From Epithemia pelagica (taxonomy: Eukaryota > Protista > Bacillariophyta), in assembly GCA_946965045.2 (NCBI GenBank), contig OX337232.1, positions 1,612,001-1,676,000 of the forward strand: a stretch of 64,000 nt of DNA, in the 5' to 3' direction. Under the pieces are notes generated by a model, which saw nothing but the letters and a program-made list of their open reading frames with translations, was not told the origin of the DNA and made no database searches. The position numbers were made by a program, and so were the translations under genes. Below, one piece after another: positions 13,683 through 35,739 of the stretch. Position 1 is the stretch's first letter, and the number at the start of each line of letters is the position of its first letter.

Positions 13683-15327
13683 GGTGATACGGCCAGACCC
13701 TGCATTTTAGCGGCCAAATGACCATGGTGGTCTTTAACGATTACTAGCTCAATATAGCACCTCCATAGAAATGGGATGATAGAAATCATCTTCATACAAT
13801 GCTTTAGGTCCCCACCGGGCACTTTTTCCATATCTGCCATCGTCATCGAGTTCTCTCTCATCATTGTAGGGTCATTTTTTTTGCGATTTGGCCGCTAGAT
13901 TGCCCGTTGGCCGGTACATTCACCATGCGATTTCTCCACCAATACTTGACCAATTGCCATGAAATTAAAATAAGTTATCGACCTTAGTGTAAATGAGAAC
14001 AGTATTGACCCATATAGGCTATCCCCAAGCATAGGATGCAAACGAGCTTCCACACCATTGCGTCGATTTTTCGACGTGGCACGGACCACATGAGATTAGC
14101 CTACTCATTCGTCGAAGTCAGCTCCATGAATACGGCCGCTCCAGACGTCCTACTTAGTAGTCTTTTATGTTAGGCTCTACTTTAGCAATCTGAGGTATCA
14201 GATTGATCATCGGTGATATGGCCATTGAGAAAAGGCCATCCATCGATGGACGCTTCTTTTCGACGCATCACACAGAACAGGAGTTTTTGACCAAAGGATG
14301 ACGAGACCCGGCTCCATGAATATGGCCGCTCCAGACGTCCTACTTAGTAGTCTTTTATCTTCGGCTCTACTTTAGCGATCTGAGGTATCAGATTGATCAT
14401 CGGTGATATGGCCATTGAGAAAAGGCCATCCATCGATGGACGCTTCTTTTCGACGCATCACACACAACAGGAGCTTTTGACCAAAGGATGACGAGACCCG
14501 GCTCCGTGGATATGGCCGCTCCAGACGTCCTACTTAGTAGTCTTTTATGTTCGGCTCTACTTTAGCGATCTGAGGTATCAGATTGATCATCGGTGATATG
14601 GCCATTGAGAAAAGGCCATCCATCGATGGACGCTTCTTTTCGACGCATCACACACAACAGGAGCTTTCCTCCATGGATATGGCCGCTCCAGACGTCCTAC
14701 TTAGTAGGCTTTTATGTTCGGCTCTACTTTAGCGATCTGAGGTATCAGATCGATCATCGGTGGTATGGCCATTGAGAAAAGGCCATCCATCGATGGACGC
14801 TTCTTTTCGAAGCATCACACACAACACGAGTTTTTGACCAAAGGATGACGAGACCCGGCTCCATGGATATGGCCGCTCCAGACGTCCTACTTCTTTGACC
14901 GTTACTATAGAGACTAAGTTAGGCTATACAAGTTTCAGATCCGGCGTAGGGGCCATGGTCCTCATGGTCGAGGCGATCATCCATGGACGATTATTCGTCG
15001 TGCCACGGAGCACAAGGATTTTGGACCAATGGACGATGCCATGCCAATATTCGACAATGGTCCCTCTGGACATCCTACTTTTTGCCCGTTACTATAGAGA
15101 CTATGTTAGGTTACACAAGTCTCAGATCCGGCTTAGGGGCCATGGTCCTCATGATCGAGGCGATCATCCATGGACAATCATTCGTCGTGCCACGGAGCAC
15201 AAGGATTTTGGACCAATGGACGATGCCATGCCAATATTCGACAATGGTCCCTCCGGACGTCCTACTTTTTTGCCCGTTAGTATTGAGACTACATTAGGTT
15301 ATACAAGTTTCAGAGCCGGCGTAGGGG
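13683..15327 (+). repeat. Left inverted arm: ~450-bp unique terminus, type-A tandem units (190,190,167,190 bp), then type-B units (~187 bp), interrupted by copia
   Basis: CCAGACGTCC recurs at 14141, 14331, 14521, 14688, 14878; type-B motif CCGTTACTATAGAGAC and variants recur near 14900, 15087, 15273. Confidence 0.9.
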
Positions 15328-16110
15328 TGTTAGAATTCTCACCGTCTATGGTGGTTAGATTCTACATCTCATCGATTCCCCATGTCACATAGCCTCGTGC
15401 TATCGCATCATGCCCTCTAGCTTCGAGCTATGTTTCCTAGCTTCGCGCTATATCAACCTATATTTCTTCGCAAATCATGAAAAGTGAGAATAGATTGACG
15501 AACTCACTCTCAAGACTAAACTGGGTCGTGCGGTATTACAACGGACATAAATTTGGCCGTTGCTCGGACATTATACTAACGCCCTAAGCGTACGCGCCCG
15601 AAATCATCGAGCGCGCCCAAGCGACATCCGAGCGCTATCGGCATCTATCCGATCCAACGGTCTAAGTATCCCAAGCACGACACACGATCACGCGAGACCA
15701 TATTTCCATTCCCACAATCTCCAAATTGTCAACAAGCTGCGCGCCATGAAAACAACTATGCCAACCCAAAGCAAGAGCTGTTGACCCTGTATATGTTATC
15801 CGCCCACATATACATGTCATATACATCACATGAATCAACTCCAACTATTCCAAACCTGTTGCCGCCAAGAACCTATGACACATGACCCTTGGCAGGACCG
15901 AACATTTCACGTAGACCTATCGTAGTAATCAACACACAATCTAACAATATCACCATTTATCACATCCTCTTTTGTGTCCCGACTATCCTTCTGATAGACT
16001 TCGACTTGCTTGCTTCTCTGACCCTGAGAAGCTTGTATCGGTTGGTGACCTACCTGATTGTCTGCTCTACCGAGCATCAATGTCCCTACGATTCAGAAAG
16101 AATTGTAACA
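15328..16110 (+). repeat. 5' LTR
   Basis: TGTTAGAATT...GAATTGTAACA, direct repeat of 22929-23711. Confidence 0.97.
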
Positions 16111-16124
16111 GATTAACAGTCTCA
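16111..16124 (+). promoter_or_regulatory. Putative primer-binding site complementary to the anticodon stem-loop of tRNA-Asn(GUU) (half-tRNA priming)
   Basis: GATTAACAGTCTCA directly after the LTR; reverse complement TGAGA-CTGTTAA-TC is a canonical anticodon arm. Confidence 0.65.
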
Positions 16125-16146
16125 AAGCTTATTTCCTTGTGGTTTC

Positions 16147-16926
16147 ATGGATACTAACGAGATTATCACTCCTGTACGACAGATCTATCGAGCCAACCTG
16201 CATCCCGGGCAGCCCGATACCCTGGTGCAGCAGGAACTGGTGCCGACGCCGAAGGCAGCCAACACATCGGTCAACATCTCCGTCGACAGTTCCAACAGCA
16301 ACCCATTCGAGACTCCAACCCAGCCTCACGCTCCAATCCCTGCGCCGTTGCTTCGGCCCCCGAGTCCGCCTCGTCGGCTCGTCCCTTCTCGATCCCGTCG
16401 TACCACCCGGTTGATTGCTGATCATATCAAGTACTTCCGCCAACCAACTTGTTCGACCTTCGATCCCGAGATCATCCGTGGGGAGACCCAGATCGAACGC
16501 CAGTTCCAATCGGTGACCCACATCGTCGACCAAGAAGACATTGACCGTCTGAACGACCAACTTCATCGTTCTCCGAGGCGTCGCCTCATCTTTGCCGCCC
16601 TCTCGGGCAACCCCATCCGTACTGTCCACCTTCGCTTCCTAACCTTCGAGCGCCCAACTGGATACTACAATACCATCCACGTCGTGAACGCGACGACTTG
16701 CCCTCTGCCTCCTAACGTTGTACGCCTAGATAACTACGTTGCCTACATCCACGAGGTCCATACCATCGAGGACCATCGTGCAACTATCTACCCTTTGCGT
16801 GCCGAGGTCGAGAACCACCTGGCTGAAGGTGATTCCCCTTCTTCTGTTGCATGTGCTGCCCCATCTGAGCCTGGAAGCGACTCTGATCATTCGGAAGAGG
16901 GTGAGGATTCGGAGACCGAAGCTTAA
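16147..16926 (+). CDS. Extra ORF (259 aa) of the copia element upstream of gag-pol; Pro/Arg-rich N-part, acidic tail
   Basis: ATG-initiated open frame between 5' LTR and gag-pol; no gag or pol motif recognised. Confidence 0.65.
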   Translation: MDTNEIITPVRQIYRANLHPGQPDTLVQQELVPTPKAANTSVNISVDSSNSNPFETPTQPHAPIPAPLLRPPSPPRRLVPSRSRRTTRLIADHIKYFRQPTCSTFDPEIIRGETQIERQFQSVTHIVDQEDIDRLNDQLHRSPRRRLIFAALSGNPIRTVHLRFLTFERPTGYYNTIHVVNATTCPLPPNVVRLDNYVAYIHEVHTIEDHRATIYPLRAEVENHLAEGDSPSSVACAAPSEPGSDSDHSEEGEDSETEA

Positions 16927-17246
16927 TTACTCATAGTTAACTCCCGTCCTCTCAAAACCTTTCCAAGACTTAAACTCAACGCACATCCGGGTACCCTTGG
17001 TCGCACAACACGCCACACATTCCCGTCAAATCGCGAAAATTCGGCGAAAATTTGTTGAAACTCGGCGAAAATTTGTCGAAATCAACGGAAATTTCCAGGA
17101 GTCGCACATCACAACACACATCCGGGTATCACATACGTGGTACATACGTGGCACACGTGGTACATCCGGGTTCACATCACATCACACATTAAATAAACCA
17201 CATCACACCGCACATTAAATAAACATCGAACCAACCAAATAACACC

Positions 17247-20200
17247 ATGGATCCTCAATCACCCAAGACACCTATGACTCCTAAGGGAGAAGATAACCAA
17301 GACAATGTCTCGGACACAGACCTATTCGACCACATCATATTTACTGTCTGCCAATTCTTCACCAAAGAAAGGGCCGACTACTTAATGAAGTGGATGAAAT
17401 ACCATGGTTTTGAGAACATTACCCATGTTATCTCGTATATGCAAACTAATACCGAGGAATCCATGAAGGAACTGACACAATACAAGGTCAACAAACAGAC
17501 ACATGATCTACAAGGCCCCACAAGACAGCAGATCAAGCTCTTGGCTTATTGGGCCACATACAAGACCAATGAAATTCAAGACGAGCTATCCAATAGCGAC
17601 TGGATGAACCTAACGAGGAAAGAGTTCAACACTTGGAGGATCAACACAGATTTCTCTAAGGGACCACCTAGTCAAGTCCCAGTCTCGCCAATGAAGTCAC
17701 CGTCATCTGTGAAATCTGTCAGCACAGTTACTGCCGCATCCCAATCTCAACAAGACCTTACAGCATTCAGAAAGGGAACTAAGCGCGACGCAACTGCATA
17801 CGAGGTATTCAAGGATGAACGATACTACGATTCATTCTGGCGTGTATTCAAGACTACAGCTAAGGCTCAAGGCCTATCCAACGTCCTGAATTTCAAATAC
17901 ACACCACCCCATGATGATGAGTATGCCGAAGAACTTTTTCAAGAGCAACAAGTATTTCTTTACTCCGTTCTTGTCCGTATCATTCAGACTGACCAAGGTC
18001 GAGCCTATGTACGTGAACATGAACATGATGAAGATGCGCGTGCCGTATTGCAGAAGTTACACTCTTTGCATACCGAATCCGACCTAGCAAAGCGAGAAGT
18101 CCTCCGCTTAACCAACTACATTTCCAATCTACGTCTTGACGACACATGGCGCGGAACAACACGTCAATTTCTTCTACACTTTCAAGAGCAGCTACGTTTG
18201 CTAGACAATTTAGTGACATTGTCTGATCGCATCCCTGATCATACCAGGATGACCTTCCTCATGCAAGCTGTAGAAAAGGTACCTGATCTCCGCCGAGTCA
18301 AGATCTTGGATAATGTGGTGAACACCAAATCCGGTGCAAAATCCCTTTGCTATCAATCATACTTCCGTCTCCTTCTAGACGCAGCTTATGACCATGATCA
18401 AGCAACCCAGTCATCTGTTCATAGTCGCCGTCGACATGTCAAACAACATGAATCACTATATGGCCAAGATACAGATGCTGACATAACCTCACAAGATGAT
18501 ATGGAGTATCATGTCCACAACACCAAAGCGACATCTGAATCTCCATCCTCTTCGTCCAAGGTTAGTCTACCGCGTGACCTATGGTTCAAACTTTCTGAAG
18601 AAGATCGCAAGTTGATCATTGAGTATAACAAGATGATTCAAGCACCTTCATCAACAACACCGAGGACAGTGCAAACACATGCCCTCGACATTGATCCGGA
18701 ACCTGATCCTGACCCCAACCAAGTTGCATCTGATGACGACTCACCTGGCGTAGTCCCTGAGCATTCAGATGATTCAGATCCGGTTACACAATTTATCAAC
18801 CAAGCCATGACGACTGATATCAATCACCCGGCAACTGACCTGACTAGTGTTCTTTCTAACGCCAAGTCCAAGACAAGCAAGAAGGTTACTTTCAAAGCCA
18901 ACATGCATAAACAAGCAGGACATGTCCCACGCTATCTGTTTTCCAGGAAATCTACTTTACCAGGGAATCAATTGATTGACCGTGGTGCTAATGGAGGACT
19001 TGCTGGTTCTGACATGCGCATCCTTTCTAAGACTGGCCGTCATATCACTATTGTGGGTATTGATAACCATGAACTTACTGGGCTCCCTGTCGTCACATGT
19101 GCCGCAAAGTTTGAGACCAATGATGGACCTATTGTCGGCATCTTCAATGAATATGCTTATTATGGGAAGGGCTTATCTATCCATGCTCCTGGTCAATTCG
19201 AGCATTTCGGACTTGCTGTTGATGAACGATCTGTTAAAGTTGATGGTAAACAACGCATCACTACACTTGATGGTCGTGCCATACCCCTTCACATCAAGGA
19301 TGGGTTAGCCTACATCCACTCCTTGGGTATCCCCAGCGACGATGACATGGATACCTTACCTCAGATCATCTTCACGTCACCCGACACATGGGATCCTGGT
19401 GTTCTGGACCATTCGTATTCTCCCACACCCTCTGACAATGATCCTGATTGGAAACACGTCAAGACTGATGGTAGTATGTCGAACCATCCATATGACAACT
19501 ATGGGGAGTACACTGATCGTGTTGTTTGTAACCTCAATCTCCTTTTGGATCTCCCATATGACCATGGACCTGACGACGCACCCTTCTTTTCTATCTATGC
19601 TGACGCAGAAGGTAATGATCCTACACTTCATGCCTCTGTCCACCGTCGTTACCAGGAAGCGTATGACTGGAAGAAGTTCCGTCCATTCTTTGGTTGGCAA
19701 TCTGAAGATGTTATTGCCGATACGTTCAAGCACACTACACGTAATGGTAGCATTCCTTTTGACCACGACACCCTCAAGAAACATTTCAAGGCTCGCAATC
19801 CGGTCCTTAATATACCTCGACGTCATGAACCCGTTGCTACTGACTCGGTTTTCTCCGACACCCCTGCTGTTGACCATGGCGGTAAAGTCGCACAAATCTT
19901 TGTTGGTCGAGATACTCTGGTTACTGATATCTATGGGATCAAGTCGACCAAACAGTTTGTCAATACTCTCCAGGATAACATCCGGTTTCGTGGTGCCATG
20001 GAGACCCTTATCAGTGATGGTGGTTCATCTCTCATCTCTCAAAAGGTCAAAGACATTCTTCGCACTTTGCTTATTGGGGAGTATCGATCTGAACCTTATC
20101 ATCAACACCAGAATAAGGCTGAAAACCGTTATCAGACCGTTAAACGTATGACCAACGCTCTCATGAATGCCACTGGTTGCCCTGCCAACACCTGGCTTCT

Positions 20201-22934
20201 TTGCCTTGAGTATGTCTGTGACTTATTGAACCATACGTCATCACCCACCCACTCCGGTCGCACTCCTCTTGAGGCTCTCTCCGGTCGCCCACCCGACATT
20301 ACTCATCTCTTGTTCTTTCCTTTCTGGGATGAGGTTTACTACCGTGTCGACCCCGCTGAACCCAATTCCGGTTCATATCCATCTTCTTCTGATGAGAAAC
20401 TTGGCCACTGGGTTGGTTTTGCTCACAACGTTGGTGATTCTTTTACTTGGAAAATTCTCACCCAGGATAACCAGATAATTTATCGTTCTGCCGTTCGCCG
20501 TGTTGAATCCACTACACCTAACCTACGTGTGGATCGACCTTCAGGGGAGGATTCGTCTGAGAAGGATGACAATGATAAGCAAGCTGACACTGTCTTCATT
20601 CGCAGTGATAGTGAAGATCCATCCAAACCAATGCCCACGATCGATTTTGACGACATGATAGGACGCACATTCCTATGCGACACAGAAGAAAATGGGGAGC
20701 GACACCGTGCACGTGTCATCAAACGAGTCATTGATCTTAATGAAGAAGCAACGAAACAGGAAGAACGTGTCAAGTACATTTACCGAAAGACAAATTCTGA
20801 TGTTGATGAGATGATATCCTATAATCAACTCATGGAGTATATCGAACGAGATAACCAAGCTCAAACCTCTGGAGATAATCTTTTCAGGTTCAGGGATGTC
20901 ATTGCCCATCAAGGCCCACTGAACACAACTGATCCAGATTACAAGGGGAGCAAATATAATTTGCTTGTTGATTGGGAAACTGGGGAGACTACCTATGAAC
21001 CTTTATCACTCATCGCCAATGATGATCCGATCACTGTAGCAATTTATGGAAAGAAACATGGTTTACTCAACGAACCTGGATGGAAGCATTTGAAACGTTA
21101 TGTCAAAACAAGCAAACGTCTCATTCGAGCAGCCAAACAGTCAAGGATTAAACAAGTTCACCATTCCGTCAAGTATAAGTTTGGATTTCAAGTACCACGC
21201 AATTATGAGGAAGCTGTTGCTCTTGATAAACAACATGGCAACACAAAGTGGCAGGATGCAACAGAATTAGAATTGTCACAGATCCAGTCCTACAAGACAT
21301 TCAAGGATTTTGGGAAAGCCATCTTCATTAAAGGGAAAGTATCCAATGCACCTGAAGGATATCATAAGATACGTGTGCATCTTGTCTTTGACGTAAAACA
21401 TGATGGACGACATAAAGCAAGACTTGTCGCAGATGGACATCTCACAAAAGAACCTGTTGAGACAATCTATTCAGGTGTTGTTTCCATTCGCAACCTCCGC
21501 ATTGCCTTATTCCTGGGTACTTTGAATGACTTGGAAATATGGGGAGCAGATATTGGAAATGCATATCTGGAAGCCTTGACAGGGGAGAAAATTTTCATTG
21601 TCGCAGGACCTGAATTCAAGGAATTAGAAGGTCACATCCTGATTATATACAAGGCACTTTATGGATTGAAGTCATCAGGCGCACGCTGGCATGATGTCTT
21701 ATTCGATGTTTTGACAGACATGGGATTTTCACCAAGCAAAGCAGATCCGGATATCTGGATGAGGAAAGCACCTGGAGAAGACTGTTACGAATACATTGCC
21801 GTATACGTTGATGACTTAGCCATTATTTCTACTGATCCTGGGAATATCTGCAAGATCCTGAAGGAGAAATACAACTTCAAACTCAAAGGAGATGGACCTA
21901 TTGATTTCCATTTGGGATGTTGTTACACCAAGGATTCTGATGGAACATTCGTAGCAGATCCAAGACGCTACATTGGTAAGATGATGGACACTTTCGAACG
22001 AATCTTCAAGGAGAAACCCAAGAAAGCCAAAACACCTCTTATTGGTGGAGACCATCCTGAATTGGATGATTCTGAGCTCCTTGATGAAGAAGGTACTAGC
22101 CATTTCCAAACTCTGATTGGACAACTCCAATGGGTGATCACTATTGGTCGTTTCGACGTCTTCACCGCTACAATGACGCTATCACGCTTTCGTGCTGCTC
22201 CGAGGAAAGGACATCTTGATAGAGCCAAGCGTATCTATGGATACCTTGCACATCTCCCAGAAGGCGCAATCAGATTTAGGATTGGAGAGCCTGATTATTC
22301 AAGTCTTCCTACCCAAGAATTTGATTGGACTCGCACTGTCTATTCGAATGCAAGTGAACGTATTCCTGAAGACTGCCCAACACCTCTTGGCCGCTATGTT
22401 ACCACAACTCATTATGTTGATGCCAATCTCATGCATGACATAGTCACTGGTAAATCCGTCACTGCTGTTCTACATTTGTTGAACGGAACACCTATTGACT
22501 GGTACAGCAAGAGACAGAGCACGGTGGAAACTGCTACCTATGGATCCGAGTTTGTGGCTGCAAGGACAGCAATAGATCAGATTACAGAATTACGACATTC
22601 TCTCCGCTACCTTGGAGTACCTATCCGAGAGCGAAGTTACTTGTACGGAGATAACAGATCTGTTGTGCTCAATGCAACCGTTCCTCACTCCATACTATCC
22701 AAGAGACACCATCTTCTGTCATACCACCGAGTTCGTGAAGCCATCGCAGCAAAGTATGTTGCATTCTACTGGAAAGATGGAAAGACCAACCCTGCCGATA
22801 TCCTTCGCAAACATTGGGATTTCGTATCTATTTGGCCCATGCTCAAGCCATTGTTGTTTTGGAAAGGGGAAGTTCAAGATCTCAACAAATCCAATGATGA
22901 CAAGGCTGAAACGACGAGTTGTGGGGAGTGTTAG
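17247..22934 (+). CDS. Copia gag-pol polyprotein (1895 aa)
   Basis: Protease LIDRGANGG; integrase VATDSVF / ISDGG / HQNKAENRY; RT KARLVADG, LYGLKSSG, YVDDL; RNase H YVDANL, YGDNRSV. Confidence 0.97.
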   Translation: MDPQSPKTPMTPKGEDNQDNVSDTDLFDHIIFTVCQFFTKERADYLMKWMKYHGFENITHVISYMQTNTEESMKELTQYKVNKQTHDLQGPTRQQIKLLAYWATYKTNEIQDELSNSDWMNLTRKEFNTWRINTDFSKGPPSQVPVSPMKSPSSVKSVSTVTAASQSQQDLTAFRKGTKRDATAYEVFKDERYYDSFWRVFKTTAKAQGLSNVLNFKYTPPHDDEYAEELFQEQQVFLYSVLVRIIQTDQGRAYVREHEHDEDARAVLQKLHSLHTESDLAKREVLRLTNYISNLRLDDTWRGTTRQFLLHFQEQLRLLDNLVTLSDRIPDHTRMTFLMQAVEKVPDLRRVKILDNVVNTKSGAKSLCYQSYFRLLLDAAYDHDQATQSSVHSRRRHVKQHESLYGQDTDADITSQDDMEYHVHNTKATSESPSSSSKVSLPRDLWFKLSEEDRKLIIEYNKMIQAPSSTTPRTVQTHALDIDPEPDPDPNQVASDDDSPGVVPEHSDDSDPVTQFINQAMTTDINHPATDLTSVLSNAKSKTSKKVTFKANMHKQAGHVPRYLFSRKSTLPGNQLIDRGANGGLAGSDMRILSKTGRHITIVGIDNHELTGLPVVTCAAKFETNDGPIVGIFNEYAYYGKGLSIHAPGQFEHFGLAVDERSVKVDGKQRITTLDGRAIPLHIKDGLAYIHSLGIPSDDDMDTLPQIIFTSPDTWDPGVLDHSYSPTPSDNDPDWKHVKTDGSMSNHPYDNYGEYTDRVVCNLNLLLDLPYDHGPDDAPFFSIYADAEGNDPTLHASVHRRYQEAYDWKKFRPFFGWQSEDVIADTFKHTTRNGSIPFDHDTLKKHFKARNPVLNIPRRHEPVATDSVFSDTPAVDHGGKVAQIFVGRDTLVTDIYGIKSTKQFVNTLQDNIRFRGAMETLISDGGSSLISQKVKDILRTLLIGEYRSEPYHQHQNKAENRYQTVKRMTNALMNATGCPANTWLLCLEYVCDLLNHTSSPTHSGRTPLEALSGRPPDITHLLFFPFWDEVYYRVDPAEPNSGSYPSSSDEKLGHWVGFAHNVGDSFTWKILTQDNQIIYRSAVRRVESTTPNLRVDRPSGEDSSEKDDNDKQADTVFIRSDSEDPSKPMPTIDFDDMIGRTFLCDTEENGERHRARVIKRVIDLNEEATKQEERVKYIYRKTNSDVDEMISYNQLMEYIERDNQAQTSGDNLFRFRDVIAHQGPLNTTDPDYKGSKYNLLVDWETGETTYEPLSLIANDDPITVAIYGKKHGLLNEPGWKHLKRYVKTSKRLIRAAKQSRIKQVHHSVKYKFGFQVPRNYEEAVALDKQHGNTKWQDATELELSQIQSYKTFKDFGKAIFIKGKVSNAPEGYHKIRVHLVFDVKHDGRHKARLVADGHLTKEPVETIYSGVVSIRNLRIALFLGTLNDLEIWGADIGNAYLEALTGEKIFIVAGPEFKELEGHILIIYKALYGLKSSGARWHDVLFDVLTDMGFSPSKADPDIWMRKAPGEDCYEYIAVYVDDLAIISTDPGNICKILKEKYNFKLKGDGPIDFHLGCCYTKDSDGTFVADPRRYIGKMMDTFERIFKEKPKKAKTPLIGGDHPELDDSELLDEEGTSHFQTLIGQLQWVITIGRFDVFTATMTLSRFRAAPRKGHLDRAKRIYGYLAHLPEGAIRFRIGEPDYSSLPTQEFDWTRTVYSNASERIPEDCPTPLGRYVTTTHYVDANLMHDIVTGKSVTAVLHLLNGTPIDWYSKRQSTVETATYGSEFVAARTAIDQITELRHSLRYLGVPIRERSYLYGDNRSVVLNATVPHSILSKRHHLLSYHRVREAIAAKYVAFYWKDGKTNPADILRKHWDFVSIWPMLKPLLFWKGEVQDLNKSNDDKAETTSCGEC
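22921..22928 (+). promoter_or_regulatory. Polypurine tract
   Basis: GTGGGGAG immediately 5' of the 3' LTR. Confidence 0.7.
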
Positions 22935-23711
22935 AATTCTCACCGTCTATGGTGGTTAGATTCTACATCTCATCGATTCCCCATGTCACATAGCCTCGTG
23001 CTATCGCATCATGCCCTCTAGCTTCGAGCTATGTTTCCTAGCTTCGCGCTATATCGACCTATATTTCTTCGCAAATCATGAAAAGTGAGAATAGATTGAC
23101 GAACTCACTCTCAAGACTAAACTGGGTCGTGCGGTATTACAACGGACATAAATTTGGCCGTTGCTCGGACATTATACTAACGCCCTAAGCGTACGCGCCC
23201 GAAATCATCGAGCGCGCCCAAGCGACATCCGAGCGCTATCGGCATCTATCCGATCCAACGGTCTAAGTATCCCAAGCACGACACACGATCACGCGAGACC
23301 ATATTTCCATTCCCACAATCTCCAAATTGTCAACAAGCTGCGCGCCATGAAAACAACTATGCCAACCCAAAGCAAGAGCTGTTGACCCTGTATATGTTAT
23401 CCGCCCACATATACATGTCATATACATCACATGAATCAACTCCAACTATTCCAAACCTGTTGCCGCCAAGAACCTATGACACATGACCCTTGGCAGGACC
23501 GAACATTTCACGTAGACCTATCGTAGTAATCAACACACAATCTAACAATATCACCATTTATCACATCCTCTTTTGTGTCCCGACTATCCTTCTGATAGAC
23601 TTCGACTTGCTTGCTTCTCTGACCCTGAGAAGCTTGTATCGGTTGGTGACCTACCTGATTGTCTGCTCTACCGAGCATCAATGTCCCTACGATTCAGAAA
23701 GAATTGTAACA
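22929..23711 (+). repeat. 3' LTR
   Basis: Direct repeat of 15328-16110. Confidence 0.97.
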
Positions 23712-24460: not shown

Positions 24461-24553
24461 AGATTGAATCGATCTTAAAGCAGAAACGTTTTTAACTAAT
24501 GAAGCAAGTGTCTTGCCTTGTTTCTAACGTCAGCACTATATGTAGTTACTCAA

Positions 24554-25700: not shown

Positions 25701-26936
25701 TCAATTGTTCAAATCGAGTCCACCGAGCACTTTCGTTGGTGAGGAGTGAGGGATGTTGTGACCGTGCTTGTAGAATTTTGCGAGACGATCATTCATCTTA
25801 TATTCGGTCGGTAATTCATAGTTGTTTCTGGGTGGGTATGTATGGACAGTCTCATCGCGTCCTTGGTACACGTAGAAATGGGCACGTGGATCACCTTGGG
25901 TACCATTCACGAAGCCTCCAGCGTGAACGGTATCGCCTCGCATAAGCAGCATCGTTCCATAAAGGATCTCAACCACCTCACCCAGCTGATGGAGTTTGGC
26001 AGTGTGGTTGTTACGATGCTGCCATATTTCCACGGCCATGCCGGCTTCCGTCAGGGGCATGAAGACAACAAACGGGACACGTTCTTTGAACGGTGCCTTT
26101 TTCTTTCCCACTCCCCGAGTTGTCACTCCTTTCGATCTCGGGCTCTCACCGGGCAAAAGGTCATACGAACTCGGCGTGACAACTTCCCACATGAAGTCCA
26201 GGTGCGGCTCTTGGACTTTTGGCTCTTCGGTCTTGATATAGGACAGGTGAATCTGGATTCCGTCCGCAAACGAGACGTCTGCTGCGTAGCCCATCTCCAC
26301 AAGGGCTTGAGCGAGAACTGTCTTGAACTTCGTCGTCATTGCAGCTAGCTCGTCCTTAGAGTAGGCGCTAAAGTCATGGCTCATCACAAAAGCTTCATTT
26401 TCCTGCATGCGCATTTGAATTTGCTTCGAGAAGTTTTGAACCCCTCGCATCCTCTTCGTGATCTTGTCCTTTCCGTGCCTGTCCGTTCCGAGACACCACG
26501 GTAGACGCAACATATCAAGCAGCTCCTTCGCAACCACCACAAAACGTCCTCGGTGGTCACCCTTGAGATCGACCAACAAATGGGCATGCTTCCGGTGCAG
26601 TTCCTTCACTTGCTGCTCTGTAGTCGCTTGTTTGACGACGGAATCTTCAATGCGCTCGAGTGACGGAGCTGCCGATCCTCCCGGACTGGAGAGATGATGG
26701 AGTACCGGGTGATGGGAAGGATGAATGGGCTGTGGTGGTACCTGCCCATATTCTCCATAAGGTGGCTGCCCGTAGGCCGGCGAGTAATGAGGCTGACTTT
26801 GCCCTGGGAAGTGCACCGACGCAAATGCGGACTGCTGATAGTGGGGAGGAGATTGGTACAGAGGAGGTTGGCGTGGAGGATGATAGTACGGTGGAGGCTG
26901 CTGTGGATGTTGGTACGGAGGAGATTGGCCGTAGGT
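25701..26936 (-). CDS. 2OG-Fe(II) dioxygenase-like (double-stranded beta-helix) frame with Pro/Gln/Tyr-rich leader; in frame with the upstream SET ORF across one TAA
   Basis: QEPHLDF (HxD), FVVFMPLT strand, LLMRGDTVHAGG (distal His), GDPRAHFY (2OG-binding Arg); frame is open from 26936, just after the stop. Confidence 0.75.
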   Translation of the reverse strand, partial: TYGQSPPYQHPQQPPPYYHPPRQPPLYQSPPHYQQSAFASVHFPGQSQPHYSPAYGQPPYGEYGQVPPQPIHPSHHPVLHHLSSPGGSAAPSLERIEDSVVKQATTEQQVKELHRKHAHLLVDLKGDHRGRFVVVAKELLDMLRLPWCLGTDRHGKDKITKRMRGVQNFSKQIQMRMQENEAFVMSHDFSAYSKDELAAMTTKFKTVLAQALVEMGYAADVSFADGIQIHLSYIKTEEPKVQEPHLDFMWEVVTPSSYDLLPGESPRSKGVTTRGVGKKKAPFKERVPFVVFMPLTEAGMAVEIWQHRNNHTAKLHQLGEVVEILYGTMLLMRGDTVHAGGFVNGTQGDPRAHFYVYQGRDETVHTYPPRNNYELPTEYKMNDRLAKFYKHGHNIPHSSPTKVLGGLDLNN

Positions 26937-28235
26937 TTAATGGTCGTGAGCAGGGACAAGACCACGGGCTGGAGGAGGGGAACCAAGAGGAACAGGGGCA
27001 GTCGCAGTGGCAGCAATGGCAGGAGTAGTGACCTGAGGAATCGGAAAAACAACAGGAGCATCATCCACCGGACCATGTTCAGAGAGCTGCACTGGAGAAT
27101 CCGCCTCACCAGAACAACGTGTATTTGGCTTCTTCTTGTTCTTCTTCTTTCCGGGCAAATCTTCGCTCTCTTCCCCACCAGTGGATCTACCACGCTTCTT
27201 TCCTGCGCCCTCGCAAGGGATGTAGGATGAAGCTTGCATTGCATTCTCCTGGGTGATGTTGTAGAACAAGAAACACTCTTTGCCCTCGTCGATGTCCCTG
27301 ATTGCGCGGACGAGAAGATTTTTTTCTACTTTAATGTTGTACATTTCATCTGCTTCGTTGGGGACTTCACCCTTGTCGTAGAGGTCGTAGTAGGGATCGT
27401 TGCTCAGGTGGAATCCCATGAAAAAATAGTTCTTGTTGTCAGGTTGAACGGTGCGTGGTTCATCGTCGGCTCCAAATTGAAGCGAGTACTCGCTCCGCGG
27501 GACAAGTTTTGTTGTTACATCCTGTCCTGCATAGACACCTATCACCTCTCCTTCTTTGTATTCCTGCGCTGCAAAAATACCAAATCCACCGTCTTTTCCG
27601 TCTTTGACTTTGACCTTCGACTTCTTCACAACAAAGAGAGGTGTTTTTCCCAGCATAATGTTGAACTCCGGGTCATGGTCGAGCGTGAAACTGACATTCG
27701 GGAAAACGTTCATTTTTTTCCCTCGGTGTTGCTTCAACGGAATCCCAATTCCCACAGATCTCGATGCATTTGTTCCGAGTTCGACACCGTACTCATCGAC
27801 CTCCTTCTTGATACCTGTCCCTGATTTCCGAATGGGAGCAGCTTTCACCAAAAATGTTACGCTAATCTTCTGCGAGACGAACTCTCCGTATGCGTTGAGA
27901 AGCACATCACTTTCGTGGATTGTAGAGGCCAGATGTGTGAGACCTTGGATGAAAGTGGTACGCGGATCTCGCGTAGAGCTCTTAATGCGCTTCACTGCTG
28001 CGACGGCGGTCCTGTAGGCCTCTTTACGTCGGGCAACGAGGCGCTGACTCACCGCCCGGTGCGTGACGCTGTAGGCTTTGTCACTATCATCCTTCAGATT
28101 GCCTCGACGACTCTCCGCAATCCTATTTTCGGTCACCATAGCAAGATCTGCGTCCGAAAGAAACCGATGATGACCCGCTGTTGGTGTCGCTTCCTTCGTT
28201 GTTGTCATCTCCTCTTCGGGCGCTTCGTCTGCTGT

Positions 28236-28316
<81 letters not shown>

Positions 28317-28382
28317 TGGCGGTGCGGCTGCCTGTGAGACAGTGTCTACAGCATCCAAAAGAGTATCAAACCTCTTTGGCAT
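26937..28382 (-). CDS. SET-domain lysine methyltransferase-like protein (transposon cargo, SET-2) with Ala/Thr triplet tract near the N-terminus
   Basis: GGFGIFAAQEYKEGEVIGVYAG, FMGFHLSNDPYY, YNIKV, AIRDIDEGKECFLFY; same subfamily blocks as SET-1. Confidence 0.85.
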
Positions 28383-28780
28383 CGTTTATCGTTTTATTCT
28401 CGTGTTCAACAAAAGGTTTCCTTCGTCGGTCGAACACTTGAAACGCGACAAAACACCACGATCCACAGTTGACTTGAACTAAAATTGAGTAACGCTTTTG
28501 AGAATCCAAACTTACTTATGCCCTGTGCGCATGGCAAAGCCACATTTTTGGTGCGTTGACTGCTGCGACTGCATTAGGCACATTTTTCGGTATGTTGACT
28601 GATGCGACTGCGTCACAAACTGAGAGGTTTTCCCTCCAACATCGATCCACAGTTCATTCAACAACCACGTTTCCAAATCGGAAATTTGCTTTCGACCCAC
28701 GATGGAAATTGTCTTCCTTTACCTTTTACATTGCTCAGAATAAAGACGCGAGACAAAGCGGTAGAGAAAGATAATCAAAG

Positions 28781-29375
28781 ATGCCCACGACGCAGAAGGC
28801 GAAAGATCAGAAAGCACCTTTAGGAGTTGGAACGAAATGCTACATACGACAAGGAGACAGGGCATGTATTATTATTGAGGCCCTTGATTTGCAAAAGTGG
28901 CGTGTTGCTGTAGTAGACAGGCAAGGCAATCCTACTGACCAGATAGAAGAAGCCACGTCCAAGAGACTACGGAAAATAAAGAAAGATGAGCGCTTTCCTG
29001 GGGAACCCGTACCGGACCCAGATGAAACAGCCGTAAGCACAACCGCAACCGAGACCGTGGCCGTAACCGCAACCGCAACCGTAACCGCAGCCGCAGCCGC
29101 AACAACGACCACAACCACAACCACAACCGCAGCCGCAGCCGCAACCGAGACCGCAACCGCAGCCGCAGCCGCAGCCGCAGCCGCAGCCGCAACAACAACC
29201 ACAACCACAACCGCAGCCGCAGCCGCAGCCGCAACCGAGACCGCAACTTCAACCGCAGCCGCAACAACAACAACAACAACAACAACCACAACCGCAACTG
29301 CAGCTGCAACCGAGACCGTGGCCGCAACTGCAACGGAGACCGTGGCCGTAACCGCAACCGCAACCGAGGCCGCGG

Positions 29376-29433
<58 letters not shown>

Positions 29434-32283
29434 AACAACGACAACGACAACGACAGGAGCTGAGCCACCCGTCACGGAAGCGAGTACAATTCACCCACCG
29501 ATTTTGACAGATGTGGACCAAGACAAAGACGATCCGAACATCATAGCGCAAGCTGCGGAAGCGGAGAATGTAGACCACGGGCCCCCAACCAATGAAGGCA
29601 ATGCAAATGATGAAGAGGAAGGTGGTGCTGCTGTTATTGCCGAGGCAGCGGCCGCTGCCGCCGCCGATGAGGATGACTCGTCGGTTGCAGCAGCGGATAA
29701 TGAAGCCGCTGAAGATCCAACGGAGCTTGATGCAGATCTTGAGAATGAGGGGGCTGAGCAAGCCAATGCAATGGCTCTCGGGGCCCTTGTTGAACAAGAC
29801 GACGACATTCACCGTCAGAGATTTGCGGCCTATAGGGCTCGAAAACAGCATCTCATTACGTCCAACTGGAAAGTGACCATGAAACCTCCAAAGAAGAAAG
29901 GGATTGAGGTCGGGGATAGAGTTTCCGAGAGGGGTGCGAATCCTCGATACGGGATAGTCATCAGCAGAAGAAAGGATCCAAATGCTACTCAAGGAAACCT
30001 GTGGACGGTGCATTTTGATGGAGATGAGGAAGCGACCATAGATATCAAGCATACCCAACTCCGAAAGCCCGACGACAACCGAACTTTCGTATGGAAGATT
30101 GTACGGGATTCGTCTCCCGATGAGTCAGTCACCGAATACCAAGAGGCTGTTGGAATTGTAGGCTTCGACTTTTTGGGGAAAATGGCTCCGTACGAAATTA
30201 GCGCAGATAATATTGAGTACAAGTACCCCTTTCTTGACTTGTTGATTCATTTCTGGCCTGGTAAGTCAGCACTCTTTTTCTTGAATGCTCTTTAGTCCAT
30301 GTCTCATTTTTCTATCGATTTGTTCATCCATTACAGGAAATTGGCGTGATCAGCTAAAAAACCTTAATTTATTCTTAGAGCGAACAAACCCTTCTCGCCA
30401 TAAAAAGAAGAAGATTCGACCCGTGACAGAGAAAGAATGGTGGGTTGTATGGGGAGTGATCCTCTCTGCCAATCCCCTCAAAAAGGGAGGAAAGGCTCTT
30501 TTCCAGAAGCCTGAACAACGACGGCTGTCGTCCACAGTGAATCTCGGTACAAAAGGCGAAAACTTTATTGCTGAGAGTCGGTTCATGGATATCAAAGAGC
30601 ATCTCAGGCATGCCTTTGCGGGACGGGACTCCACTGACCCCTGGAATGAAATCCGTCCATTGATTGACGGCTTTAATCAGAATCGCCGAGGCGTAGTCGC
30701 AGCATCCGCGACACAAGTGCTTGATGAATGCATGAGTGCATTTCAACCACGGACAACCAAGTCATCATTGTTGCCACATCTGTCTTACGTGGCACGGAAG
30801 CCCAAACCTCTTGGAACTGAATTCAAGGTGAGTAAATGGAGAAGAGGATATTTCCAGAAGCTTTGTTACTCACTGTGTGATATTCCCTTGACAGGTGACT
30901 GCAGACACTGCGACTGGGTGTCTGACCTTTCTTGAAATCCAAGAAGGCAGACTCCCAATGCGTGCGAAGAAGTATGTTGATGGTTTGGGAGTAACTGGAG
31001 CGACAACTCTGCGACTGATTGAGAGCTCGCAATACTCAGGGCAGCAATTAAATGGTCGCTATGAATCCCAACTCGATTCCAAGCGATGCCTCTATATCGG
31101 AGACTCTTGGTTTGGAAGTGTCAAGATGGCCGAGAACCTCAAGTGTACGTGGCACGAGCAGAGGGAGGACGACGATGATGATGGTCTCGTGTATTACGTG
31201 GATAAGGAGAAAGGGGTCAACCCAGACGCCCACGAAGTGATTGGTGCCGTCAAGACCGCCCACTCTTGGTTCCCCAAGGACGAACTTGAGAAGGAGATGA
31301 AGGACTTCCCATCCGGCGCCTATCTCGTCATGGAGTGCACGGCACCTGAGACGGGAGTAAAGCTTGTTGGAATCGGATACAAGTACAACTCACGGAAGGT
31401 CCTCCTCTTTGTTATGACTAAAAATGCGGGGAAAACGATCCCGGGATCTCCGTACATTGCTCGATTTACCGATGAGTTCGGCAATGTCAAAAGCCGGAGA
31501 GTCGAACGGCCTGACTGTATTTCCCAGTACTTCAAGTGTGCGAATAAAATTGACCGTCACAATCATCTGCGTCAGGGCATCCTCCGTCTCGAGCAGTACT
31601 GGAGAACAGTTGATCCATGGTTTCGCATTGCGACAACGGTGTTCGGAATGACAGTGTCTGATTGTTACCTTGGCATGCGTTTTCATCTGCAAGCGGAACC
31701 ATTCTCGAGCTTTACGATCGAAGACTTCGCGGATATGCTCGCAAACGACCTTTTGAGAAACAACTTTTCCGATGATCGCAGCAATCGAAAGGCGGGCATG
31801 TTACCAAACATCCCAGTGACACGTCGTCCGCCGCTTTCGGTACACACTGTTGGGCCCTCAGCTTCTGTGCCATCGAGCGTGCACAATGTGGGGGGGAATG
31901 CATCTCCTAACTCCATGGTGTCTGATCTGACCAATGATTCACTGGTTTGTCATGAGGTTGTGGAACAGGCAGAAAAGTCTTTATCTGACCAGCGGCCCGT
32001 GAAGCGCAAATGTGTTATTTGTAAAAATGACACGAGATCAATGTGCGGGCATCCAACATGCTGCAATATGATCAAGATGTTTTGTGGGGAAGCCAAAGTT
32101 GGAGTTCCTTTGTGTAAGCCCTCCATGGGTATTCGTCGCGGGGAAGTGCGGACTTGCCTTGAAGAGCACATGTGCCGTGTTATTGCGGCAAGCCAAAAGG
32201 AAAACCACAACTCATTTGTCCCGAACATGAGAACCGGGTCGACTCTACATTGTTTCATGTCTTTGCATATTAATAAATTATGA
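28781..32283 (+). CDS. piggyBac-like (PGBD) DDD transposase, join(28781-30260,30337-30827,30895-32283), ~1119 aa, with two Tudor/SH3-barrel-like N-terminal modules and a Cys-rich C-terminus
   Basis: VLDECMSAF...RKPKPLGTEFK, YIGDSWFGSV, NKIDRHNHLRQ; C-terminal CxxC...CxxxxC...LC...CxxxH; GTAAGT..ACAG and GTGAGT..GACAG introns keep the frame. Confidence 0.88.
29037..29456. repeat. Compound triplet/hexamer microsatellite encoding a Thr/Ala linker in the transposase
   Basis: (GCAGCC)n, (ACAACC)n and (ACAACG)n runs, all in frame. Confidence 0.9.
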
Positions 32284-32345
32284 TTAGGAGCTTAGTAACA
32301 TCGAAATCTTAGTACTCAAGTGTAATATGCTATGGGATCCTACGA

Positions 32346-32882
32346 CTAATAGGTTCGAACGCTCTCCTGATGGGGCCACGTCTCTGTCGCTTTATCAAAA
32401 AGTGACATGAACGTAGCCATCCCAACAACACTCATCGGCACAGTAATGACCATGGGCCCCATGGCCATCTTGGTATCCAAAGAATGAGCCGTTTCAATCG
32501 TGAGCTCTCCTTTGACAAGGGAACCGCTCTTGGAACGGAACTTCTTGGAGCGTATTTTCTTGTAGATCGATCCGACTGGGATGACGACATCAGGCATCGA
32601 ATCATCCATCTTCTCCCGACCAAATGCGCTAATTGATAGCATCCCACCGTTGCTCCCGTACTTGGAACGCTGTAAAAGAACGACGCCTCGATCCACCACA
32701 AGCGTCCCCTTTCCACCTTTCCCATCACGAGCGACGTCTTGGACGTACACATTCACGCCCGCTTCGCCATAGATCGTTGCTCGGCTACCATGGAGCTGAA
32801 TCTCGCTCCCGTCATCTTGCATCACGTTGAACCCATTTGCAAGGAGAAGTCTATTGCGCGATTTGTGCTCGTATTCCGACAT
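32346..32882 (-). CDS. Uncharacterised cargo protein 'X2' (178 aa), homolog of 3613-4122
   Basis: VNVYVQD...VVDRGVVLLQR, IPVGSIYK, DTKMAMGPMVITVPMS align to X1. Confidence 0.75.
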   Translation of the reverse strand: MSEYEHKSRNRLLLANGFNVMQDDGSEIQLHGSRATIYGEAGVNVYVQDVARDGKGGKGTLVVDRGVVLLQRSKYGSNGGMLSISAFGREKMDDSMPDVVIPVGSIYKKIRSKKFRSKSGSLVKGELTIETAHSLDTKMAMGPMVITVPMSVVGMATFMSLFDKATETWPHQESVRTY

Positions 32883-33371
32883 CGTCCTTCGTCCATCGTA
32901 AATGTAGAAAATATGAAGGGTGAGACGCGATGAGTCGCACAGTGCAAAACAAGTTTGAGATAGGCACTTACCTCTTTTCCTACTCCTTATTGGATTGTCA
33001 AATGAAAAGTCTTTAGTTAGAGGAGCTTGCCACTCAGATGGCCGATCAATTCTCTCCTCTCTGCACGAAAGGACGAACACGTCCGTGGTATCCAGTCGGC
33101 ATGCATAAAAATGCAGTTGTGGTTTGGGGGAAACGGTGGGGACTTTCTACAATTGCCACTCGGGATTAATTAAAACAACGTGACGATATGCTTAAGAAAA
33201 GTTCCATCCGTTGAAGCGCGTGCCCTCCACAATTTACAGCGCGACAAGATTTTTATGTGAGACGACTGGTCGATCATCAATCAAATAACAAGAGCAACCT
33301 TCCCATAAAGGCATAAAGGACAGCAAGGAAAAGAAAACAGACGACAAAAGCAAGGACAAAGAAAGAAAGAC

Positions 33372-33884
33372 ATGTCGCTCTACATCGACAAGCGCCGTGT
33401 TAGTGCGAGGCTCCAAGGCCGTACGACCAAAAGTGTTGTCACAACTGGTGCATCCAAACCCACTATGCGCCCAACCCAAAAAGGTGCCCACAAGAACAAC
33501 AAGAACAACAACAACGACGACAATGCGAAAGCCGTAGATACGGAGAAGAAGAAGGAGATCTTGCTCGGGTGTGATGCAATTGGTGTGGAAATGAGTCGAT
33601 CATCAATCCTCAAGATGAGAGACGATTTCCTGGAACATGGATCGAACGGAGGGAGCAACACTCCAGTGCGCCATTCCAAGATCAAGTTTGCTGATGAGAT
33701 CAGCCCCATCCCTGAAGACAATCAGAAGCCTTCGTCCCGTTTATCCACCCTAAGCACCGCCTCCATACGTAGCCTCAAGAGTGCATCTTCCGGTGGAACT
33801 GCTGTAGACAGCGATCTTTCGTTCGACTTTGCCGAGACTCAACAAGATAACGGTGACTTCCTCTTCAAAACCTATGGAAAATAA
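33372..33884 (+). CDS. Uncharacterised low-complexity cargo ORF 'Y2' (170 aa), divergent from X2
   Basis: ATG-initiated; basic N-terminus, Ser-rich/acidic C-terminus; head-to-head with X2 as Y1 is with X1. Confidence 0.5.
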   Translation: MSLYIDKRRVSARLQGRTTKSVVTTGASKPTMRPTQKGAHKNNKNNNNDDNAKAVDTEKKKEILLGCDAIGVEMSRSSILKMRDDFLEHGSNGGSNTPVRHSKIKFADEISPIPEDNQKPSSRLSTLSTASIRSLKSASSGGTAVDSDLSFDFAETQQDNGDFLFKTYGK

Positions 33885-33963
33885 ATGATAGTTAAGCCTG
33901 TCAAGTATAGCAATGACGATAAATATGGAAACATAAGCTTTAGAGTTGGATCATAGCGCGGCT

Positions 33964-35714
33964 TCGTCCATTGGTCCAAAATCCTTGTGCTCCGTGGCAC
34001 GACGAATGATTGTCCATGGATGATCGCCTCGATCATGAGGACCATGGCCCCTAAGCCGGATCTGAGACTTGTGTAACCTAACTTAGTCTCTATAGTAACG
34101 GGCAAAAAAGTAGGACGTCCAGAGGGACCATTGTCGAATATTGGCATGGCATCGTCCATTGGTCCAAAATCCTTGTGCTCGGTGGCACGACGAATGATTG
34201 TCCATGGATGATTGCCTCGATCATGAGGACCATGGCCCCTACGCCGGATCTGAGACTTGTATGACCTAACTTAGTCTCTATAGTAACGGGCAAAAAGTAG
34301 GACGTCCGGAGGGACCATTGTCGAATGTTGGCATGGCATCGTCCATTGGTCCAAAATCCTTGTGCTTGGTGGCACAACGAATGATTGTCCATGGATGATC
34401 GCCTCGATCATGGGGACCATGGCCCCTACGCCGGATCTGAGACTTGTATAACCTAACTTAGTCTCTATAGTAACGGGCAAAAAAGTAGGACGTCTGGAGC
34501 GGCCATATCCATGGAGCCGGGTCTCGTCATCCTTTGGTCGAAAACTCGTGTTGTGTGTGATGCGTCGATAAGAAGCGTCCATCGATGGATGGCCTTTTCT
34601 CAATGGCCATATCACCGATGATCGATCTGATACCTCAGATCGCTAAAGTAGAGCCGAACATAAAAGCCTACTAAGTAGGACGTCTGGAGCGGCCATATCC
34701 ATGGAGCCGGGTCTCGTCATCCTTTGGTCGAAAGCTCCTGTTGTGTGTGATGCGTCGAAAAGAAGCGTCCATCGATGGATGGCTTTTTCTCAATGGCCAT
34801 ATCACCGATGATTGATCTGATACCTCAGATCGCTAAAGTAGAGCCTAACATAAAAGACTACCAAGTAGGACGTCTGGAGCGGCCATATCCATGGAGCCGG
34901 GTCTCGTCATCCTTTGGTCGAAAGCTCCTGTTGTGTGTGATGCGTCGAAAAGAAGCGTCCATCGATGGATGGCCTTTTCTCAATGGCCATATCACCGATG
35001 ATTGATCTGATACCTCAGATTGCTAAAGTAGAGCCTAACATAAAAGACTACTAAGTAGGACGTCTGGAGCGGCCATATCCATGGAGCCGGGTCTCGTCAT
35101 CCTTTGGTCGAAAACTCGTGTTCTGTGTGATGCGTCGAAAAGAAGCGTCCATTGATGGATGGCCTTTTCTCAATGGCCATATCACCGATGATCGATCTGA
35201 TACCTCAGATCGCTAAAGTAGAGCCTAACATAAAGGACTACTAAGTAGGACGTCTGGAGCGGCCGTATTCATGGAGCTGACTTCGACGAATGAGTAGGCT
35301 AATCTCATGTGGTCCGTGCCACGTCGAAAAATCGACGCAATGGTGTGGAAGCTCGTTTGCATCCTATGCTTGGGGATAGCCTATATGGGTCAATACTGTT
35401 CTCATTTACACTAAGGTCGATAACTTATTTTAATTTCATGGCAATTGGTCAAGTATTGGTGGAGAAATTGCATGGTGAATGTACCGGCCAACGGGCAATC
35501 TAGCGGCCAAATCGCAAAAAAAATGACCCTACAATGATGAGAGAGAACTCGATGACGATGGCAGATATGGAAAAAGTGCCCGGTGGGGACCTAAAGTATT
35601 GTATGAAGATGATTTCTATCATCCCATTTCTATGGAGGTGTATATTGAGCTAGTAATCGTTAAAGACCACCATGGTCATTTGGCCGCTAAAATGCAGGGT
35701 CTGGCCGTATCACC
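33964..35714 (-). repeat. Right inverted arm: type-B units, four 190-bp type-A units, unique terminus
   Basis: Reverse complement of the left arm; AGTAGGACGTCTGGAGCGG recurs with a 190-bp period from ~34485 to ~35245. Confidence 0.9.
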
Positions 35715-35739
35715 CGTGAAGGCACTAGTGCGGCGCCGC

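Follow-up and report, generated by a model that had tools for sequence, protein, structure and literature searches.

We analysed 64,000 nucleotides of the genome of the diatom Epithemia pelagica (contig OX337232.1, here C5, 1612001-1676000; hereafter the window), which contain a large transposable element into which a copia retrotransposon has inserted. In its canonical form of ~14 kb, this element consists of paired inverted arms, a three-exon gene for a transposase of 1,119 aa, a gene in which a SET domain is fused to a second conserved half, and two small conserved open reading frames (ORFs), O244 and O170. We consider it very probable that window positions 13679-35724 are one copy of a cut-and-paste DNA transposon with a transposase of the piggyBac superfamily, which duplicates CTAG and has tips of the form 5'-TGCC...GGCA-3'. 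An earlier note on this stretch had recorded the arms, the nested copia, a piggyBac-like ORF and the lack of TTAA correctly, and had gone wrong on the ends of the element, the target-site duplication and the number of ORFs: the six ORFs counted there, apart from copia, correspond to three transposase exons, the two halves of the SET-fusion gene and two further conserved ORFs. The features of the window copy, with strand where there is one, are as follows.

13675-13678: left target-site duplication CTAG, the same 4-mer as at the right end and at other copies
13679-13682, plus: scarred left tip, 'ctct' in place of the TGCCTTCACG found in all other copies
13683-15327, plus: outer part of the left arm, ~440 bp unique, then 190-bp units (14121-14667) and 187-bp units (14869-15327)
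23717-24462, plus: inner part of the left arm, 3.9 units of 188 bp (23735-24462), continuous with 15327 in uninterrupted copies
25701-28382, minus: SET-fusion gene, one 894-codon frame, its N-terminal half with a SET domain, its C-terminal half with an HxD..H motif
28781-30260, plus: transposase exon 1, N-terminal extension with Thr/Ala-rich low-complexity runs
30261-30336: transposase intron 1, 76 nt, GTAAGT..TTACAG
30337-30827, plus: transposase exon 2, first part of DDE_Tnp_1_7, first catalytic Asp in 'VLDEC'
30828-30894: transposase intron 2, 67 nt, GTGAGT..TGACAG
30895-32283, plus: transposase exon 3, second Asp in GDSWFGS, third Asp in KIDRHNH, Cys-rich C-terminal tail
32346-33080, minus: O244, conserved partner ORF, also in the related families X and Y
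33372-33884, plus: O170, conserved ORF
33945-35724, minus: right arm, 187-bp units (33960-34506), 190-bp units (34483-35277), unique terminal part and intact tip
35725-35728: right target-site duplication CTAG, common to an abutting miniature inverted-repeat transposable element (MITE)

Copies, ends and target site

The genome assembly searched for copies comprises 60.5 Mb in 23 contigs. With the first 200 bp of the arm as query we found 10 near-identical ends, which form five pairs on C5, C2 (two pairs), C18 and C3:

window copy, contig C5, 22.0 kb
copy C2a, C2:1487882-1501887, 14.0 kb
copy C18, C18:1260997-1275003, 14.0 kb
copy C2b, C2:3833514-3847235, 13.7 kb
copy C3, C3:2414194-2420453, 6.3 kb

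After orienting, the four full copies (window, C2b, C2a and C18) are collinear and 95-97% identical, with lengths of 13.7-14.0 kb once copia is left out (13,657 bp for the window copy); their ORF layouts identify C2a and C18 as the same element, inverted relative to the window copy. The C3 copy is an internal-deletion derivative, which keeps both arms and lacks the equivalent of window 14891-31329. Additional arm pairs were found at 84% identity on contig C1 and at 75% identity on C9, C8, C1 and C11, along with MITE-sized pairs, and two diverged subfamilies, at about 78% and 67% nucleotide identity, retain the gene order.

Aligning the genomic copies, as had been proposed in the earlier note, defined the ends of the element. 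All ends outside the window copy read CTAG directly followed by TGCCTTCACGGGTGA: the tip TGCCTTCACG continues into GGTGATACGG and is preceded by CTAG at each end. In the window copy the right tip is intact, running through CGTGAAGGCA to position 35724 and then into CTAG, while on the left side CTAG is followed by 'ctct' instead of the 10-bp tip and then by GGTGATACGG. The sequence GGTGATACGGCC, previously taken as the start of the arm, is indeed where similarity begins in the window copy, with the true tip lying 10 bp further out. Because the left tip is scarred, the duplication had been missed and was thought to be lacking; in fact CTAG is present at 13675-13678 and at 35725-35728, as at the other copies. 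An extra match to GGTGATACGGCC at window position 55798 has no element context, is within chance expectation and was rejected as an element end.

Thirteen insertions from three families could be compared for their flanking 4-mers, of which 10 are CTAG/CTAG, one is CTAG/CTAA (copy C1a), one ATAG/ATAG (copy C8) and one CTAT/CTAT (copy C11). The central TA is invariant (13/13), with a mild preference for C at -1 and G at +4. TTAA flanks none of these insertions, nor any of five elements from metagenomes described below, and neither TTAA nor CCC..GGG tips occur at the window copy, as had been noted before. The matched pairs that deviate from CTAG, ATAG/ATAG and CTAT/CTAT, argue for a genuine duplication of 4 bp.

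It is quite unlikely, in our view, that this lineage duplicates only the central TA, with the outer C and G being fixed bases of the element (G-TGCC...GGCA-C) together with a flank preference. At CTAG sites, i.e. in 10-11 of the 13 insertions, a 4-bp duplication and a TA duplication with fixed outer G..C bases predict the same letters, so that only two insertions favour 4 bp; the CTAG/CTAA pair of C1a fits a TA duplication more simply, as it then requires no mutation, and the only fully invariant part of the site is TA itself. Against this, each of C8 and C11 would require the outermost base of the element to have mutated by coincidence to the letter found in the opposite flank, and piggyBac-type enzymes make cuts with a 4-nt stagger, at TTAA in the case of piggyBac (PMC5381638) and with TA-centred 4-base overhangs in the case of PiggyMac (PMC3077386). 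We keep to a duplication of four bases, mostly CTAG.

The same 4-mer is also found where the element meets its neighbour on the right:

35729-36390, plus: MITE of 662 bp, a non-autonomous relative of the clade, left tip TGCGGCGCCGCGTGATGCGGCC, right tip degenerate, left flank CTAG, right flank CTAT

The MITE abuts the giant element tip to tip with a single CTAG common to both, as would be expected if a flanking copy of the target had been used again.

Transposase and partner genes

The transposase is encoded by three ORFs in three different frames (28781-30295, 30285-30935 and 30895-32283), in which two short introns with consensus ends delimit exons measuring 1480, 491 and 1389 nt; together these give 1,119 codons. 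The three-piece layout recurs in the C9 subfamily. For similarity searches each exon was used separately. Exon 2, searched as ORF 30285-30935, matches the Pfam family DDE_Tnp_1_7 (PF13843) with 33.1 bits against a cut-off of 22.4 (E = 5e-8). Exon 3 has 63 relatives in a large protein collection, and among these P0056 (E = 5.5e-28), P0059 (1.8e-37) and P0061 (3e-16) match PF13843, covering profile positions 3-349. One of them, P0059, bridges to the Trichoplusia ni (T. ni) piggyBac structure 6x67 across D268 and D346 and also aligns to piggyBat (9c0f); a phmmer search of PDB sequences with P0056 found nothing. P0059 is also collinear with the window sequence over the splice junction, from exon 2 ('VLDEC...RKPKPLGTEFK') into exon 3 ('TADTATG...GDSWFGS...KIDRHNH').

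Through P0059 and 6x67, the first catalytic Asp ('VLDEC') and the second ('GDSWF') map onto T. ni D268 and D346; the third, corresponding to T. ni D447, was placed by its motif and by structural coverage (chain residues 297-536) and not by direct residue alignment. Two residues of exon 3, D70 and D220, do not vary among 33 relatives. AlphaFold modelled exon 3 with a mean confidence (predicted local distance difference test, pLDDT) of 80.4, and a Foldseek search with this model returned piggyBat 9c0f (5.7e-7) and piggyBac 6x67 (1.9e-6), all other matches having E > 0.04. Alignment with VIA-align gave the same picture: chain C of 6x67 reached Z 13.7 (227 residues, root-mean-square deviation 5.5, chain residues 297-536) and 9c0f Z 12.3, followed by Tn5/IS4 transposases at Z 10-11 and nothing else above Z 4. 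The Atlas neighbours of exon 3 are DDE_Tnp_1_7 clusters in which Bacillariophyta is the commonest phylum. Taking sequence, catalytic residues and modelled fold together, we assign the transposase to the piggyBac superfamily, which bears out the piggyBac-like transposase reported earlier inside the arms.

The C-terminal part of exon 3 carries a Cys/His pattern (C373, C376, C384, C389, C407, C421 and H425) that is invariant in 12 relatives and confidently modelled. It gave no match to Pfam zf-Tnp_2 and is at most a candidate counterpart of the piggyBac cysteine-rich domain (CRD). At the other end of the protein, exon 1 adds an N-terminal extension of ~490 aa with long Thr/Ala runs, encoded by microsatellite-like CAACCG/CAACGA runs at 29040-29455, and with two barrel-like segments, the second of which (residues ~320-493) has conserved counterparts in families X and Y as well as on the metagenomic contigs L057-L059.

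In the SET-fusion gene, Pfam places the SET domain at 26937-28382 on the minus strand. The frame of the window copy is broken by an in-frame TAA at 26937-26939 and that of C2b is cut by a later stop, while in the C11 and C1a copies the fusion is a single ORF (L036:7465-9798 and L037:3440-5716). The C-terminal half found neither a Pfam match nor relatives in a word search, and its AlphaFold 2 model is unusable (pLDDT 31). It does contain the blocks EPHLDF ... GDTVHAGG ... RAHFY, conserved between subfamilies in an HxD...H pattern, and its Atlas neighbours are annotated as '2OG-Fe(II) oxygenase' and PhyH at 0.93, with few shared features. These observations are a weak lead towards a candidate 2-oxoglutarate (2OG)/Fe(II) dioxygenase.

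O244 has no Pfam match. Families X and Y carry it at the matching place and in the matching orientation, with 38-41% amino acid identity, and lack the SET fusion; no passenger genes were seen on the short metagenomic contigs. Alignments of O244 to the diverged subfamilies hold 1-2 stops, possibly introns. Two further ORFs, at 24518-25348 on the plus and 24554-25345 on the minus strand, were rejected as genes, as they lie over a CTT repeat, are unconserved in the C9 subfamily and have ratios of non-synonymous to synonymous substitution rates (dN/dS) of at least 1. The repeat is a long CTT run at 24868-25086, which creates spurious ORFs on both strands of the element.

We compared the coding sequences of the window subfamily with those of the C9-type subfamily, at a dS of 1-1.5. 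The dN/dS was 0.19-0.29 for the transposase exons, 0.29 and 0.32 for the SET and C-terminal halves of the fusion, 0.25 for O244 and 0.30 for O170. Among young copies it is ~1, the expectation for decaying insertions. Between subfamilies, these sequence comparisons thus place four genes under purifying selection, and values of 0.2-0.3 at this level indicate that the extra genes are old genes of the element rather than recent captures. What they do for the element we can only infer.

By analogy with the solved piggyBac/piggyBat complexes, the three-aspartate (DDD) enzyme would bind the tips, and possibly also a tip-like 12-mer repeated in the 190-bp units of the arms. The cut would fall at the TGCC/CTAG boundary and the ends would be joined to a CTAG target with a 4-nt stagger, which would leave CTAG duplicated; cleavage chemistry and binding sites are both derived from this analogy. 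The window copy itself is probably immobile in cis, with its transposase gene still open: it lacks TGCCTTCACG at the left tip, has copia within the left arm and a stop in the SET-fusion gene, and all of its transposase exons are open.

Arms, relatives and nested insertions

The two arms are near-exact reverse complements, as had been claimed, with 95-100% complementarity between 13683-15327 and 34048-35714. Because both contain tandem units, which we delimited with Tandem Repeats Finder, they pair in several registers. Arms of 1.2-3.3 kb with 3 to 14 units each are found in all three subfamilies. Units are homologous between the window subfamily, where they measure 187 and 190 bp, and the C9 subfamily, where they measure 193 bp, and they have kept their period and several short blocks. 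In the window subfamily each 190-bp unit contains a further occurrence of the tip 12-mer GGTGATAYGGCC, which is located at 11-22 nt from the tip; each arm holds five occurrences in tip-like orientation, with 0.33 expected by chance. The 190-bp units are thus weak candidates for repeated transposase-binding sites; we do not claim them as such, since neither diverged subfamily repeats the motif of its own tip.

About 20 further loci in the genome encode transposases that are 52-57% identical. From these we read two copies each of two families: X, of 8.4 kb, with 99.1% identity between the copies, and Y, of 6.5 kb, with 99.7%. Their transposases are 55-57% identical to that of the window family, and both have TGCC...GGCA ends with CTAG on both sides, unrelated flanks and degenerate terminal inverted repeats (TIRs) of ~215-240 bp. 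For each of X and Y there are about 45 tip hits in the genome, MITEs included. In public metagenome contigs we found 53 loci encoding relatives of the transposase. An unbiased search there for any inverted repeat bracketing the transposase gave nine candidates, of which five are complete elements of 3-3.6 kb (L064, L069, L071, L076 and L077), all with TG[CG]C...G[CG]CA ends flanked on both sides by CTAG, and the other four were rejected as adapter or low-complexity artefacts. Families X and Y and the metagenomic elements thus agree in their tips and in CTAG, so that this signature goes with the clade of transposases and not with the long arms, and sequence comparison identifies the 14-kb long-armed form as a derived giant within this clade. 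A scan for more short elements with TG[CG]C tips in the sequence examined re-found only positions inside the arms.

Some of these loci have peculiarities of their own. In L071 the exon-2 match is opposite in strand to the exon-3 match, and this contig may be rearranged. The terminal inverted repeats of L083 (4-22 and 3447-3465), which contains AGATGTGTATAAGAGACAG, and of L081 (1-47 and 4206-4252) look like sequencing-adapter or assembly artefacts rather than ends of transposons. A 40-kb stretch of the diatom genome (G000, C1:643461-684343), bounded by C1a-type ends, holds two C1a-type transposase copies plus an X-type tip and transposase and is probably a nest of CTAG-piggyBac insertions.

These relatives also bear on the origin of the arms. 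In principle, a piggyBac gene and host cargo could have been enclosed by two separate, oppositely oriented insertions of an arm-like repeat, or enclosed or captured by a foldback element that belongs to a different superfamily. Kilobase inverted arms of tandem units do resemble the arms of Drosophila Foldback, and exon 3 is without a direct Pfam match. We nevertheless regard such an origin as very improbable and reject the foldback capture envisaged in the earlier note. The near-identical ends are all paired around one gene set, with even the deletion derivative retaining both arms, and the piggyBac-type transposase is the only one encoded. Moreover, the same tips and CTAG flanks recur in short-TIR and metagenomic relatives, and purifying selection has acted on all four genes across the subfamilies, with the arms diverging in step. 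The other possibility raised at the time, a giant piggyBac lineage that has diverged and changed its ends and target, is supported by the type of transposase, the 4-bp CTAG duplication and the TGCC tips. That the inverted arms arose in assembly, for instance from a palindrome that was collapsed or made chimeric, is barely credible, as nothing speaks for it except that assemblers are generally at risk with long inverted repeats, and five paired copies on four contigs with different unique flanks, the same architecture in diverged subfamilies and a clean copia insertion with its own duplication inside one arm speak against it. Because of the collinear paired copies, the deletion derivative and the diverged subfamilies with the same gene order, we rule out both an artefact and arms that are independent of the internal genes; nowhere were the arms independent of each other.

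Several points weigh against our interpretation of the locus as a CTAG-duplicating piggyBac-superfamily transposon, besides the small number of insertions that set a 4-bp duplication apart. An empty site was sought through the flanks of copy C2a, both unique in the genome, and none was recovered. Exon 3 alone has no Pfam match and no match among PDB sequences, and a profile built from exon 3 and its relatives did not find piggyBac among PDB sequences either, so that exon 3 is assigned to piggyBac through transitive alignment and through its fold. In the C9 and C1a subfamilies, too, we looked in the arms for further occurrences of their tip 14-mers and saw none. Finally, our reading is one of sequence and model.

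The retrotransposon nested in the left arm comprises the following features.

15328-23711, plus: Ty1/copia retrotransposon, 8,384 bp, long terminal repeats (LTRs) at 15328-16110 and 22929-23711, TG..CA ends
15323-15327 and 23712-23716: 5-bp duplication AGGGG
17247-22934: polyprotein ORF, 1,895 aa, RVT_2 and weak rve matches in Pfam

It inserted within the repeat array of the arm, and its uninterrupted target in C2b and C18 reads GGCGTAGGGGCCATGG. RVT_2 is matched at residues 1365-1584 (E = 7.4e-25), with a weak upstream rve match at residues 899-952; the order of RVT_2 with integrase upstream, the TG..CA LTRs and the 5-bp duplication identify it as Ty1/copia. The LTRs of 783 bp are identical at 782/783 positions, which points to a very young insertion. 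Fragments of the same copia family adjoin the C18 copy and occur in L051, suggesting that the family is multi-copy and probably recently active.

Together, the element and the MITE (window 13675 to 36394) occupy the intergenic space between two diverging genes, an alpha/beta-hydrolase ORF on the left (12309-13334, minus) and an ORF with weak ubiquilin/STI1-like matches on the right (37160-39253, plus); the insertion therefore lies in their common upstream region. On a practical matter, genome annotation should mask the ORFs of the element as transposon genes and not call them host genes.

Comparison with known systems

In a survey of 157 piggyBac-like elements, none from a diatom, TTAA and precise excision are general features of the superfamily, TIRs measure 12-19 bp and rare non-TTAA flanks are treated as mutations (PMC5381638); the rule has also been given as TIRs of 12-19 bp beginning with CCYT and a TTAA target (PMC5601938). 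We tested the element for a TTAA target and short CCYT TIRs and found neither, and so do not class it as a canonical piggyBac-like element. Its likeness to T. ni piggyBac and piggyBat lies in the DDE_Tnp_1_7 domain, the three catalytic Asp, the best structural matches (6x67/9c0f), a palindromic 4-bp duplication with a central TA, the existence of MITE relatives and a Cys-rich C-terminus, the last with the reservation made above about the CRD. It differs in having CTAG instead of TTAA, TGCC instead of CCYT tips, tandem-repeat arms of 1.2-3.3 kb instead of TIRs of 12-19 bp (PMC5381638, PMC5601938), a length of 14 kb instead of 2-3 kb, three exons with the ~490-aa N-terminal extension, and three conserved extra genes. 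Our search of the literature for piggyBac elements with CTAG, for non-TTAA targets and for diatoms, which did not cover Repbase, found no description of a CTAG lineage. A study of diatoms by Maumus et al. in 2009 reported transposases 'weakly related to piggyBac', giving no ends, target site or accessory genes (PMC2806351). Those elements probably fall, with ours, into one broad clade; the Atlas neighbours of exon 3 are DDE_Tnp_1_7 clusters with Bacillariophyta as their commonest phylum.

Among known members of the piggyBac family, the one that comes closest in departing from TTAA is PiggyMac of Paramecium, which produces 4-base 5' overhangs centred on a conserved TA (PMC3077386). Both are piggyBac-family enzymes without a need for TTAA, and the TA-centred overhangs match the NTAN pattern seen here. 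PiggyMac, however, is a domesticated host gene that excises internal eliminated sequences, with repair depending on non-homologous end joining and with variable outer bases, whereas here we deal with transposons and a strong preference for C..G. As TTAA is regarded as the hallmark of the superfamily and the basis for the use of piggyBac in scarless genome engineering, a natural CTAG clade with different tips offers a comparative handle on how a 4-bp target is read, and a CTAG enzyme could provide transposases with a second, orthogonal target site.

Long inverted arms of tandem units, with short motifs repeated near the ends, are also reminiscent of Drosophila Foldback (FB) and of the subterminal repeats of CACTA/En-Spm elements. 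FB and CACTA use other transposases and make duplications of 9 bp and 3 bp, respectively. Unlike in FB, the sole transposase here is of the piggyBac type and the duplication is 4 bp; neither an FB transposase nor a 9-bp duplication was found.

A doubtful extension of these comparisons is that a piggyBac clade of diatoms and other marine protists was retargeted from TTAA to CTAG and that one branch of it became a 14-kb 'chromatin-programming' transposon. It would combine arm units of nucleosome-repeat length (187-193 bp), a SET-plus-dioxygenase protein and Tudor-like N-terminal modules of the transposase, and histone marks might be written or read on the element or its targets, controlling its own silencing or integration.

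As a giant element of the piggyBac superfamily that carries genes other than the transposase, the 14-kb family can be set beside Teratorn of medaka, the known example of such an element, a 180-kb fusion of piggyBac and a herpesvirus that has kept 18-bp TIRs, CCYT and TTAA (PMC5601938). The ends and the target have changed in the diatom element, and its extra genes are three element-specific ORFs as opposed to the many genes of a herpesvirus genome. The 14-kb family illustrates that piggyBac elements can retain conserved partner genes over the long term (O244 in three families, and the SET fusion) and, likewise, kilobase repeat arms with a conserved period, both of which lie outside the current picture of the superfamily.

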